A stretch of 63,936 bases of DNA, filler included, from Ministeria vibrans ATCC 50519 (taxonomy: Eukaryota > Protista > Filasterea), in the NCBI GenBank assembly GCA_943704425.1. It is 5 parts of 5 records of this genome, joined end to end, with 100 filler letters (N's around TTAATTAATTAA, not from the genome) between each part and the next. Parts side by side here need not be neighbours in the genome. Positions count along the whole stretch, not along the records: positions 39,002 to 59,644 come from CALSCP010000807.1; 4 more parts are not named here. One strand, 5' to 3'. Of this stretch, positions 49,941 through 55,900 are shown in pieces; the first letter of the stretch is position 1; each line of letters opens with the position of its first letter. The position numbers and the translations under genes are program-made. The notes beneath the pieces were generated by a model. It saw nothing but the letters and a program-made list of their open reading frames with translations, was not told where the DNA came from and did not search any database.

Positions 49941-52900
49941 ATGCGTGTTCTGTTGATCTTGGCTCTTATGGCGTTCAATTTGGCGATTGTTGATGGTAAA
50001 GAGCGTTTTTTTTTCTACTCCTCAACTCCCCCAAAGTTGTCACCTCTGAAACGGGCGTGTCTTCCTACTTAGCCACTTGCACTACATCTCCGTGTGGTTC
50101 GAGTGGAACATGTTCAACGGTTCTGTCCAAGACAGTTGGGCCTCTCGGCACGGCGCTCTCGCCGAATGTGTTGACGTTCGATTTTGGCGTTGTCGCCGCC
50201 GCCTTTGCGACGCTCGATCTCTCTTCAAACGGTGATTTTGGTAGCACCACCGAGTACATGGTAAGACAATTGTATGATTACTTGGGTGTCAGCTCAATCG
50301 GCACTCCGGTTGCAATTGATGTGATATTAATAATAATTGTGTGTGAATCTTAATTTTTACCCGTTTCTTTAGACTATGACCTCGGGAACGTACAGCGCCC
50401 AAGGGTTCGTTGCCAGTGGATCAGATTGCAGCGTGCGAACCGAGTCAATTTCCTTGACTGCCACCCAGGTGGCAAGCATGCGTGATGCCTCGGGAAGAAT
50501 TATTGTATCCGTGTCGTTTCCAGCTTCCGTCAATATTTGCACGTCTCCGACTGTGACCATCACGCTTACAACAAATGTTTGCTCGTGCAACGCGGGCTTT
50601 ACTGGTACCTACTGCGAGACGGACATTGACGAGTGCGCCTCTTCGCCGTGCGTCAACGGCGCCACCTGCACCCCCGCGGCAGAAGTCAGTGTGGGGCCGC
50701 TTGGGCCCGCACTCAACCCGACCGTGCTCTCCTTCGACTTTGGCGCGTGGTCGGCCACATCGAACACGCTGACCATTACCAGTGATGGTGACTATAGCGG
50801 CACCTTTGAATACCTGACATGGAGTGCGGGAAGCCTTCCTGCGCGCACTGCTTTTGCCACCGCCGGCGTCGACTGCGTCAACCGAACCGAAACGTTCTCG
50901 TTGTCTGCCTCGGAAGTCGCCCAAATGATATCGGTGGCAGGAACTCTCACCAGTACGTTCATTTGAATTAATTATCACTTTGCCATTCTCCTTATGTGCT
51001 CACCTGAATATATGTAGTAAGCGTGTCGTTTCCTGTCGACGTCAACTTTTGCACAAGCCCGACCGTGTCCATGTCTCTCCTATCCACAACTTCTTCAAGT
51101 AAGACAGGAGACCAACTCCCTCTCTCTCGATCTATCACTTTGTTTCAATTACTTTGTTTTTTTTCCTCTTTATCACTTTTTTGTGTTTTTTTTCTCCCTT
51201 TCTTTCTTCCTCTCTCTCTCTATCACTTTGTTTTTTTATCCCTCCTTTCTCTCTCCTCTCTCACTCTCTCACTCTCTCTCTCTCTCTTTTATCTCTCTCT
51301 GCAATTTCCCCCTAAATTTGTTTTGTTGCGTCACTTTTCCTTGAGGCACAGGTGGTCACACCGATGCTTATGTGTGCGTCTGTCCACCGGGCTACGATGG
51401 CGCGTCGTGCAGCACCAACATCAACGAGTGCGCTTCGACTCCCTGTCAGAACGGTGCCACTTGTGTTGACGCTGTCAATGGCTACTCGTGTACATGTTCC
51501 GCTGGCTACGACGGGACACTCTGTGACAACAACATCAACGAGTGCGCGTCAACTCCGTGTCAAAACGGTGCCACTTGTGTTGATGCCCTTAACGGCTACT
51601 TGTGCACATGTTCCTTCGGCTTCAACGGCACACTGTGCGACGATCTCAATGAGTGCACTTCGGCTCCATGCCAGAACGGCGCCACCTGCATCGAATCTGG
51701 AAATACCTTCTCATGCACCTGCGCACCGGGCTATACCTCAACGTTGTGCGACGCGTCGATTGACGACTGTGCCTTGACATCAACTCCTTGCCAAAACGGC
51801 GGCACCTGTCTTGATGCCCATCAATCGTTCACGTGTGCCTGTGAGGTGGGCTTCACGGGCGACCGGTGTGAGACCGAAATCGACGAATGCGCTTCGTCCC
51901 CGTGCAGCAATGGCGGCAGTTGTGTCCAGGAGCTTGTCCTCACGCGCGGGCCGTTTGGTCCTGTTCACCGCGACACCTCCTTGTCGTTTCAATTTGGAAC
52001 GGTAGCGGCGTCCCCAACCACACTCACATTTGAAACAAACGGCGACTTTGGCTTCAGCTCCGAGTACCTCACGTGGACTGCGGGCTCACTCTCTCAGACG
52101 GCTTTTGCTGCAACTGGCAGCGACTGTGTGATGCGCACAGAGACCGTTCAGCTGTCCGCCTCGCAAGTTGCCTCGATGCTTTCTGCAAGTGGAACACTCA
52201 CCATCAGCGTCTCATTCTCGACGCAAGTTGACGTTTGCTCAAGTCCCACACTCACCGTAAAGCTCCTCACCACTTCCACCGCGTCATATGCATGTGCGTG
52301 TGCCGCTGGATTCACAGGCAGCGACTGTGCCAGTGAGGTCATCGAATGTGCGTCCAGCCCCTGTCATAACGGCGGCACGTGCGTCGAGGGCATCAACGGT
52401 TATTCGTGTGTTTGCCAAGCCGGCTACACAGGAGGCGTCTGCTCGGTTGGCATCAATGAGTGCGCAAGCAACCCGGTACGATCTTGACGCATAGAAATAT
52501 GCATTCGTTTGACTTTGTGTACATTGCAGTGTCTCAACGGCGGTGTATGTGTGGATCAGCATCTCGGATACACATGCACGTGTGGGGGCGCTGTGGGCAC
52601 CCACTGTGAGACGGACATTGACGAGTGCACCTCGTCACCATGCGGCAACAATGCGACCTGCGTCAATTTGCAAAACGCATTTGCATGCACCTGTCCCCCT
52701 GGCTGGACCGGCGCCACATGTCTTGCTGCTGTCAACGAGTGTGCGTCTGTACCGTGCCAAAACGCAGGGACGTGCGTCGACGACCACAATTCGTACACCT
52801 GTCTGTGCCATGGCTTCACCGGCGTGCATTGCGAGACGGACATTGACGAGTGTGCGTCGAGTCCATGCAGCAATGGTGGTACTTGCGTAGGAGGCGATCT

Positions 52901-55900
52901 GCTGACTCGCCCCGCTCAGACCGTCGCTTACGGCTCGTACATCTATTTCGATTTTGGCGCTGTTCCCGCCGGCTCGACGGCCACGCTGACACTGGCAACG
53001 GACGGCAACTTTGGCACAGTCAATCAGTACCTCAGTTTGGACCTCTTCTTCACATTCAAGACTGTGTTTGTGGAGGCGGCCACGACATGCCAAATGCGAT
53101 CTCAAGTGGTCGAACTGACCGTCGATGAGGTCAATCTCCTTCGATCTTACTTCGGGTCGCTCCGCATCCAAGTATACCCTTCTTCCTCTGTGACCACGTG
53201 CCCATCTCCTTCCACCAACAGTCTTTCCATGTCCGCCCTCGTCCAAGGAGGCCCATCAGCGTCCGTCACCTGTGCCTGTCCGTCGGGATTCACGGGTGCC
53301 GTCTGCGACGTAGCCATTGACGAGTGTGCTTCAGACCCCTGCCTGAACGGTGCGACTTGCACTGACGCGGTCGACGGCTACGCCTGCGCGTGTGTCGCAG
53401 GCTATGCGGGCGTTGTGTGTGAGACCAACATTGACGACTGTGCCTCGGCGCCATGCCTCAACGACGGCACGTGTGTGGATGGCGTTGAAGTGTACACGTG
53501 TACGTGCGCTGGGTTTACTGGTACTCACTGCGAGAACGACATTGACGAGTGCGCCTCAAGTCCGTGTGACAACAACGCAACCTGCGTCAATTTGTCAAAT
53601 GCTTTTGGCTGCACCTGTCCCCCTGGATGGACCGGTGTCACATGCCTTGCGGCTGTCAACGAGTGTGCGTCTTTACCGTGCCAAAACGCAGGGACGTGCG
53701 TCGACGACCACAATTCGTACACCTGCCTGTGCCATGGCTTCACCGGCGTGCATTGCGAGACGGACATTGACGAGTGTGCGTCGAGCCCATGCAGCAATGG
53801 TGGCACTTGCTTGGGGGTGTCTGTGCTGACTGCGCCGCCTGTCACTTCTCTCTCGGGCGCTTACAACAACTTTGATTTTGGCGCAGTTCCCGCTGACACG
53901 CCCGTGACGCTGACCCTCACCACAAATGGCAACTTTTCAACGAGTAGTCAGAGGCTCTCTGTGTACCTCTCCACCCGCAATCCCACGGTGTTTGCATCGG
54001 CTGCGCCCGGTTGCGTCGAACGGACAGAGACACTTATGCTGACCGCCGCTGAGGTAGCCGCGATCAAACAGTACTTTGGCGTCGCTGGTTCCTTTCGAGT
54101 GTACATCTACAGCGATTACCGTGTGCAAGCGTGTCCCAACACGTCGAATCTTGTTCACATGACAGCGAGTGTTGCATCATCGTCTTCTGGTACACCCACT
54201 GCGGAAGTCGCGTGTACATGTCCATCCGGCTTTACGGGCACGCATTGCGAAACCAACGTGGACGAGTGTGTGTCGGCACCATGCCAAAATGGTGGTACTT
54301 GCATCGACGGTGTCGATGGCCATCAGTGCGTGTGCGTGGCGGGCTACCAGGGGAGCCAGTGCCAGAGAGAGATAGACGAGTGCCTGTCAACGCCTTGCCT
54401 CAACAACGGCGTGTGTATCGATCGACTGAACCACCACTCGTGTGATTGCGTGCCAGGCTACACTGGCTACCTGTGCGAGAGTGACATTGACGAGTGTGCC
54501 TCGAGTCCCTGTACCAACGGAGCAACATGCTTGGACTCTGTGAATGCATACTCGTGCGCGTGCGCCACCGGGTTCAGCGGCACGCACTGTGAGATAAACA
54601 TCGACGAGTGTGCCAGCAGCCCCTGCCATGCTGATTACGCGCAAAGTTGTGTGGACGGCGTTGCGGAATTTACCTGCTTGTGCGAAAACGGCTTTACCGG
54701 CACCACTTGCGCCACACCCCTTGATTTGTGTTCCGACACCGTCTGTGCCAACGGCGGCACTTGTATGCGTCCCATGACACAGTCATTTGAGGCTTCGGTA
54801 CTCCCATTGGGCTGGCGCAGCACGATGCTTCGCGGACCCTCGACCATGCGCTTCAAGCTGACGGCGGCACGCGCCAAGTTTGGCTCGCGCAGCCTCAAGG
54901 CGACCAGTCGTCTGGGAACGGGTGACTCAGTGCTCGAATCGCCGCCTGCATTGGTGAAGGCACCGTTGCAGCCACTGGAGTTTTGGCATGACTACATGAC
55001 GGATGGCACCTACGACGGTGTCCATCTTGAGATTAGTGTAAACCGGTCGAGCTGGACCGAGTTTACTTCGGCCGGCGGCGTCTTTACCACAGGCGGCTAC
55101 TCCAGCACTGTCTTGTCCGAGAGTGCCTACCGTGGGTCAGCCTGGTCGGGCACGACCAACGGTGTCTTTGTAAAGGTTCTCGCGCAGTACCCACCCGAGG
55201 TTGACATGGCCACGACGGTGGCGTTCCGCTGGCGTTTCACCAGCGATTTCCCGGGCGAGTCCATTTACTACTTGGACTTACCTCCGCTTGAGCTCACGGA
55301 TGGCACAAGTATCACGTGTCTGTGTCCGGCCGAGTACACGGGCATTCGATGCGAGGAGGCCGTCCATGTGGATTTGTGTGCCTCGTCACCGTGTGGCATG
55401 AACGGCGAATGTGCCCTTTACCCTCGCACGGGGTTTGTCTGTGAATGCAACGATGGATACACCGGGGCGCTGTGCGAAACCAACATTGATGACTGTGCCG
55501 AGTTGCCGTGCAGCAACGGTGGCGTGTGTTTTGACGGAGTCAACTCGTTCACCTGCCAGTGTCCTCATGGGTACACGGGAGCGACGTGCGCCACGAACAT
55601 TGACGATTGTTCGCCGTCGCCTTGTCGCAACGGCGGCCAATGTGTGGACGGAGTGAGCTCCTACCTGTGCAGCTGTGCTGCTGGCTATACGGGCCTTACA
55701 TGTAGCGTAAACATTGACGAGTGTGGCACTCTGCCGTGCCTCAATGGTGCCACATGTACCGACGGCACCAACAGTTTTGTCTGCACCTGTGCGGCTGGAT
55801 ATGTGGGGGCGACCTGCGCTGTCAACGTTGACGATTGCACTGGAGCACCTTGCACAAATGGTGGTACATGTGTGGATGGCGTGAATCGCTACACGTGTGA

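Follow-up and report, generated by a model that had tools for sequence, protein, structure and literature searches.

Domains inserted between Cys3 and Cys4 of six EGF modules in a predicted membrane protein from a Ministeria vibrans assembly

The window analysed here is a stretch of 63,936 nucleotides, filler included, made of five joined parts of the genome assembly of Ministeria vibrans ATCC 50519 (GCA_943704425.1). The gene in question lies in the part at positions 39002-59644, a eukaryotic piece taken from record CALSCP010000807.1, and occupies positions 49941-59537 of the + strand, stop codon included. It encodes a protein with about 46 epidermal growth factor (EGF) modules, six of which are interrupted by an inserted domain. 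The explanation that best accounts for the observations as a whole, and that has a good chance of being correct, is that of an EGF rod in which six membrane-distal EGFs hold domains nested at the tip of the Cys3-Cys4 hairpin, likely for adhesion or ligand capture.

That six EGFs are split between their third and fourth cysteines had been proposed in an initial annotation of this DNA, and is borne out both by the cysteine spacing and by the matches of the two halves to a profile of the protein's own EGFs. In all six split units, the N half reads C-x4-C-x5-C and ends at Cys3, while the C half reads C-x-C-x8-C; each of them keeps the six-cysteine spacing of the EGF-like family PF00008, with consensus residues in both halves. 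The exact position of the break was located with a 36-position profile built from the 39 intact EGFs of the protein, whose positions 16 and 25 correspond to Cys3 and Cys4, respectively. The N halves match positions 1-17/19 of this profile and the C halves positions 20/22-36, which places the break always at the tip, or turn, of the Cys3-Cys4 hairpin. The Pfam families EGF, EGF_2, and hEGF match the two halves with equally complementary profile ranges. Thus, in the unit that holds insert 3, positions 1-16 of the EGF profile fall on residues 6-21, and positions 19-32 of the EGF_2 profile on residues 139-152. Split units 2-5 open with TDIDEC or TEIDEC, in the manner of calcium-binding EGFs (cbEGFs), unlike units 1 and 6 (the latter with TPLDLC); the residues that the cbEGF consensus has between Cys3 and Cys4 are displaced by the insert.

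The inserts that lie in a single exon are the following:

51924..52292, + strand: insert 3, 123 residues, uninterrupted, a predicted beta-sandwich of an unnamed family (hidden Markov model (HMM) match, E = 6e-55)
52887..53270, + strand: insert 4, 128 residues (HMM E = 9e-51; aligned in alignment A1)
53811..54212, + strand: insert 5, 134 residues (HMM E = 3e-49; aligned in A1)
54765..55316, + strand: insert 6, 184 residues, without cysteine, MAM-like by transitive evidence

The ranges first given for these four inserts are at most 1 nucleotide off. For insert 1 (50114-50579) and insert 2 (50670-51370), the outer ends stand as they had been placed, and what has to be given up is their uninterrupted course, as the former contains an intron at 50261-50372 and the latter two, at 50953-51017 and 51099-51351. 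The coding length of inserts 1 and 2 is about 120 residues each, next to 123-134 residues in the complete copies 3-5.

Inserts 1-5 are paralogues, as initially suspected, each with a cysteine pair of its own. They align over their full length (A1) with 30-53% identity to insert 3, and the local HMM detects these five and no others in the piece (domain E-values of 2e-7 to 6e-55); neither insert type turned up again there or in the neighboring gene. The reading frames are open throughout each insert and their guanine-cytosine (GC) content of 56-59% resembles that of the EGF exons (~57%). These features, together with the protein-level homologues found elsewhere, indicate that the inserts are coding and not intronic.

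The five-fold insert had been called an unrecognized repeat. This holds in so far as no described Pfam or NCBIfam model matches inserts 1-5, even with permissive thresholds, and it fails in so far as a five-copy profile, searched against 1.84 billion representative sequences, finds 49 related proteins at E < 1e-3, of which nine are below 1e-10 and the strongest has an E-value of 3.5e-36. Other searches were less productive: word-index protein searches with insert 5 or insert 3 gave no match at the lengths searched, scanning metagenomes with insert 3 by itself confirmed no relative, and a PDB sequence search with the insert profile gave matches at chance level only. The EGF protein itself and close relatives of it are absent from the protein collections searched.

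All but one (P0015) of the 49 relatives look bacterial. A local re-scan of them detects 119 copies of the domain, nearly all in giant proteins with few cysteines, and the fetched loci are bacterial by gene content. Two of these giants (P0001 and P0007) are S8 peptidases of ~4000 residues in which the domain alternates with HYDIN/ASH Ig-like modules. P0004 combines three copies of the domain with BACON and adjoins glycosyltransferase genes, P0017 shows matches to PPC (weak) and LTD, and P0025, which contains cysteine-rich DCNxNG repeats, is flanked by hydrolase genes in an NCBI assembly, where its contig measures 139 kb. In P0033, a Reelin_subrepeat-B-like region adjoins the insert-type domain, and further relatives hold dockerin, RCC1, or SdrD-B modules. 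The clusters of these proteins are labeled 'hypothetical protein' or not at all, with P0006 alone being called a 'leucine-rich repeat domain-containing protein'.

Two bacterial metagenome contigs (L002 and L004) encode giant S8 peptidases of ~3900-4200 residues in which insert-type and HYDIN/ASH domains alternate five to eight times; an alpha-2-macroglobulin-like gene adjoins one of these giants and a VWA gene the other.

An alignment of 27 domain sequences (A2) shows what the copies of both origins have in common, namely the motifs TLxLxAxGDFGxxxE, GxDC, and VxNSxxVxxxCxxNxHxVxLxY. The cysteine pair of the inserts is conserved in the bacterial copies as well. In the two copies of P0017 (L006 1607-2038 and 4439-4867) both cysteines are missing together, as expected if they form a disulfide. 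Bacterial and eukaryotic copies are 20-26% identical. Profile matches and common motifs thus show, at the level of sequence, that inserts 1-5 belong to a small, unnamed, and mostly bacterial family, homologous across both groups.

The exception, P0015, is the sole relative that looks eukaryotic. It is an open reading frame (ORF) of 221 residues on a 1354-bp metagenome contig from the ENA (L001), where the domain stands between a C-x-C-x-C half and another C-x-C-x-C half with the same Cys3/Cys4 nesting as in the window. Frame 1 of this contig also shows more EGFs and what looks like a short intron, as well as another EGF N half that leads into the initial ~65 residues of a probable second nested copy of the domain, through GxDC, at which point the contig ends. 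The evidence is weaker for this copy, which scores 34 bits against the A2 profile, EGF half included, and only 6.5 bits against the insert-only profile. P0015 is ~35% identical to the copies of the window, and the nested arrangement has thus been kept through considerable divergence.

To relate the copies to each other, 90 of them were placed in a quick tree by maximum likelihood, unrooted and based on few columns; the pieces of insert 1 were excluded, as were the second piece of insert 2 and those bacterial copies that were weak or short. One branch (SH-aLRT, the approximate likelihood ratio test, of 83) has all five eukaryotic rows on the same side, within a set of 29 rows with a support of 99. 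Their nearest neighbors are bacterial copies, those of P0045, P0017, and P0039. This topology is compatible with a single origin of the eukaryotic copies.

The fold of the five-fold insert was predicted with AlphaFold, using A2 as input and a construct around insert 3. The core has a per-residue confidence (pLDDT) of 87-95 and consists of eight strands and one short helix, with a mean pLDDT of 81.6 and a predicted TM score (pTM) of 0.75 for the construct. As modeled, the fold class of inserts 1-5 is an eight-strand beta-sandwich, which is not assigned to any named family of carbohydrate-binding modules (CBMs). The Foldseek matches listed for this model are sandwiches of a generic jelly-roll or CBM-like type: a hyaluronan-binding module, the carbohydrate-binding domain of BcsB, domains of Cry toxins, GOLD domains, Ena pilins, and viral jelly rolls.

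Insert 6 is of a different kind. No relation to the five-fold insert family was detected by hhalign, no Pfam family matches it at E <= 10, and its matches among PDB sequences are at chance level only. It does match positions 1056-1148 of the NCBIfam model rhom_dep_M36, which describes rhombosortase-dependent M36 metallopeptidases (E = 6e-9), and a search of the large protein collection likewise yields two M36 peptidases. The BLASTP alignment to residues 886-1038 of the M36 peptidase P0050 has 31% identity over 156 aligned columns (E = 7e-16). Within the peptidase region so matched, InhA-like_MAM (E = 0.005) and Reelin_subrepeat-B (E = 0.07) give hits that stay below threshold. The earlier assignment of this insert to a MAM/ConA-type jelly roll thus gains some weak backing by way of the M36 peptidases and none from a Pfam match of its own, and insert 6 is plausibly a MAM-like domain with bacterial relatives.

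The exon structure of the gene, derived from the DNA and its three-frame translation, is as follows:

49941..49995, + strand: exon 1, with the start codon and a hydrophobic N-terminus resembling a signal peptide; ends in phase 1, with a GT donor at 49996
50073..50260, + strand: exon 2, N half of split EGF 1 (Cys1-Cys3, 50075-50113) and start of insert 1 (50114-50260)
50373..50952, + strand: exon 3, remainder of insert 1 (50373-50579) and C half of EGF 1 (50580-50627)
within 50373..50952, + strand: also in exon 3, N half of split EGF 2 (50619-50669) and start of insert 2 (50670-50952)
51018..51098, + strand: exon 4, final strands of insert 2 with its second cysteine; placed by splice sites, by a match to insert HMM positions 92-120, and by alignment with the other copies
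51352..52475, + strand: exon 5 (Pfam EGF, E = 8.8e-50)
52530..59537, + strand: exon 6, remainder of the protein to the stop codon (Pfam EGF families only)

The join of exons 1 and 2 yields an alanine codon, after which comes Cys1 of EGF 1. Exon 2 matches positions 5-17 of the local EGF profile and positions 2-51 of the insert HMM (E = 1.6e-19), and exon 3 matches EGF profile positions 22-36 and then 1-17. Exon 5 contains, besides the C half of split EGF 2 and five intact modules, split EGF 3 with its insert and one further intact EGF, and ends in the start of an EGF that crosses intron 5 into exon 6. Exon 6 encodes split EGFs 4-6 and ~34 intact ones, along with the two non-EGF regions, the transmembrane helix, and the cytoplasmic tail. 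The five introns, each GT-AG, are 54-253 nucleotides long and have a GC content of 34-46%, compared to ~57% in the exons. Two of the splice joins fall inside inserts, where EYM|TMTSG matches EYLTWTAG of a paralogue and TLT|ISVSF matches TLTISVSF of a paralogue. That these joins give back the sequence of uninterrupted paralogues is internal evidence for the exon/intron model, which is shown to this extent by the DNA. Searches and folds used sequence from individual exons, with inserts 1 and 2 handled as exon pieces. Long CT-rich tracts of low complexity are found in intron 4 (51110-51300) and just past the stop codon (59540-59600).

The encoded product has a signal-peptide-like hydrophobic N-terminus, ~46 EGF modules (39 canonical by regular expression, a few atypical, and six split), one transmembrane helix, and an acidic tail of ~150 residues, and is a predicted type I membrane protein whose ectodomain forms a long rod of EGF modules. 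Both the signal peptide and the membrane-spanning helix were called by eye on the translation. Across the whole protein, Pfam finds EGF-type families only; LNR/NOD modules and cytoplasmic RAM/ankyrin repeats, the features that would mark a Notch, are not among them, and the tail is short and acidic. The membrane-proximal part comprises:

57867..58298, + strand: first non-EGF region, 144 residues, two cysteines, polybasic QGRRRA; a gap in the EGF parse
58515..59021, + strand: second non-EGF region
59022..59084, + strand: predicted transmembrane helix, followed by basic residues; by eye from the translation
59085-59534, + strand: cytoplasmic tail with an acidic run; from the translation

Neither of the two non-EGF regions has a Pfam, NCBIfam, or PDB sequence match. 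Both (57867-58298 and 58515-59021) are strand-rich, with no clear similarity to each other, and the QGRRRA motif of the first could be a processing site.

How such a protein might work is best pictured by comparison with laminin. The disulfides Cys1-Cys3 and Cys2-Cys4 of the host EGF would clamp the strands by which the insert enters and leaves, the EGF rod would run on continuously, and the inserts would project sideways, as L4 does in the LE modules of laminin. The result would be six projections along the membrane-distal third of a membrane-anchored rod, acting as binding units for adhesion or ligand capture. The peripheral geometry is presumed by analogy, and a binding role is the most likely function of the projections, held at a level of confidence slightly short of even.

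Several observations weigh against this picture. The two halves of the split EGF are poorly predicted by AlphaFold: in a construct of 156 residues the N half has a pLDDT of 48-66 and the C half of 51-72, and with one intact EGF on each side the halves remain at 43-64 with a pTM of 0.56. The alignment is shallow over these residues. A Foldseek search of the PDB with the insert model gives no match below E = 1e-3 and TM scores of 0.5 at most. No member of the family has a known binding function, and the analogy with laminin does not establish one, as the functions of L4 and LF are still unknown (PMC5338690; PMC6744579). Finally, the divergence of the inserts can be explained without selection for diversity. 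The tandem units 52596-53318 and 53520-54260, each consisting of three EGFs and a split EGF with its insert, are duplicates whose EGF parts have 93% protein and 90% DNA identity, compared to 45% and 53%, respectively, for the inserts. The EGF flanks are also less diverged at synonymous sites (18/90 identical codons with synonymous differences, versus 28/57 in the insert), meaning that gene conversion would account for the pattern without the inserts having been under diversifying selection. For the unequal divergence, faster change of the inserts and gene conversion of the EGFs are equally good explanations.

These points bear differently on the alternatives. The one that survives best accepts the nesting as real, and proposes that the inserts are structural, serving as spacers, kinks, or lateral packing surfaces rather than as ligand-binding heads. 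L4 and LF of laminin, without assigned function and with a kink at the L4 position, would fit this proposal (PMC5338690; PMC6744579), as would the regular, building-block-like alternation of the domain with Ig-like ASH/HYDIN modules in the bacterial giants, and a conserved pocket or ligand motif was not identified in this analysis. A binding role is nonetheless favored by the jelly-roll/CBM-like fold class, by the company of BACON, PPC, dockerin, and peptidase domains in bacteria, which is typical of binding modules, and by the much greater divergence of the inserts compared to the flanking EGFs. A purely structural role is regarded as the less likely option, but as a serious competitor.

A second alternative arranges the domains in series, with the EGF halves never reassembled and each three-cysteine segment acting as a linker or knot between beta-sandwiches. 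The low AlphaFold confidence on both halves in the two constructs speaks for it, as does the displacement by the insert of those residues between Cys3 and Cys4 that help calcium binding in a cbEGF. Three arguments, however, favor the refolding of the two halves into one EGF. Pairing all three cysteines of a half with one another is not possible; the EGF profile is divided with exact complementarity in seven independent instances (the six units and P0015), a feature kept over ~35-55% sequence divergence; and laminin tolerates an insert at the same site, with the disulfides intact around it. The halves would thus presumably refold, and the serial arrangement is improbable.

The last alternative, that the inserts are introns or an artefact of assembly or contamination that joined bacterial DNA into a eukaryotic EGF gene, can draw on the nearly exclusively bacterial relatives of the inserts but has almost no likelihood left, given that every insert is in frame and open over 123-184 codons with exon-like composition beside AT-rich true introns, that two inserts themselves hold GT-AG introns, that five diverged copies occupy one structural site, that the arrangement recurs on an independent metagenome contig, and that identity to the bacterial copies is only 20-26%.

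With nested, sideways-projecting domains as the preferred reading, a more far-reaching scenario can be put forward, although it should be regarded as tentative and is somewhat more likely to be wrong than right. A protist lineage would have received a beta-sandwich of bacterial surface proteins once, and duplication of the host unit would have spread it into the Cys3-Cys4 tips of cbEGFs, with a MAM-like domain of bacterial type entering at the same site. The design of laminin and perlecan would in this way have been reinvented outside animals, with the inserts diversifying as ligand-binding heads.

If the nested arrangement is true, the Cys3-Cys4 tip of EGF-type modules would be a general permissive site, used at least twice with unrelated inserts in different hosts, with a bearing on how extracellular mosaic proteins evolve. 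From an engineering point of view, such a site could be of use for grafting binders onto EGF rods and for designing the clean excision of L4 domains. The unnamed beta-sandwich family, now defined across giant bacterial surface proteins and a eukaryote, could be curated, and its distribution raises the testable question of an inter-domain transfer from bacteria.

The neighboring gene, at 39112-48717 on the minus strand and divergent from the EGF gene across a gap at ~48720-49940, is a second giant multi-exon surface-protein gene. Its ORF 48370-48717 has a signal-peptide-like start, ORF 46958-48034 encodes EGF modules, and ORF 39112-44481 encodes many PAN/Apple domains (PAN_4, E = 8.5e-31; PAN_1, E = 7.7e-21); ORF 45483-46538 has no Pfam match. 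A (CA)n microsatellite is found in an intron of this gene, at ~46960-47050.

Among known systems, the bacterial giants have in common with the EGF protein a homologous domain, its motifs, and its conserved cysteine pair. They differ in that the bacterial domain stands in series between other modules and never inside an EGF, whereas the eukaryotic copies are nested. No description of a nested or split EGF of this type was found in the searchable literature, which is weak evidence, as phrase searches were swamped by papers on EGFP and EGFR.

The closest parallel in architecture is laminin, in which L4 sits between Cys3 and Cys4 of an LE module with the disulfide pattern undisturbed, and in which the inserted domains are peripheral to a continuous LE array (PMC5338690; PMC6744579). 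The analogy with L4 drawn at the outset therefore holds (PMC5338690), while the claim of a new receptor/adhesin architecture was overstated, since a beta-sandwich between Cys3 and Cys4, peripheral to a continuous rod, is already established for laminin. In both cases the host modules are of EGF type and form long tandem arrays. However, the laminin host is an LE module with eight cysteines, whereas the host here has six and is mostly of cbEGF type; among the alignment members, Pfam EGF_laminin matches one only (E = 0.061), and the eight-cysteine pattern is not found. The inserts differ too, as inserts 1-5 give no Laminin_B match at E <= 10 and no PDB sequence match, and an L4 structure is absent among the Foldseek matches listed for the insert model. 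The EGF protein combines six nestings per chain and two unrelated insert families at one site, compared to one or two nestings in laminin, and, unlike laminin, it is membrane-anchored, comes from a genome that does not look animal, and has inserts with mainly bacterial relatives. Another laminin domain, the CBM35-like LF of the beta chain, is placed laterally between LE5 and LE6 with the LE rod continuous (PMC5338690). It resembles the proposed inserts as a CBM-like sandwich with lateral attachment, and differs in that it follows a truncated LE instead of splitting a Cys3-Cys4 loop.

Other matrix proteins offer partial parallels. The reelin repeat consists of subrepeat A, an EGF, and subrepeat B, with nothing inserted in the EGF. 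It likewise combines jelly-roll domains and EGF in a repeated unit, but here the EGF lies between two sandwiches. In domain III of perlecan, three L4 domains each split an LE module, so that nesting is repeated along one polypeptide as it is in the EGF protein; the type of host module and the insert family are different, and perlecan is a secreted matrix proteoglycan of animals.

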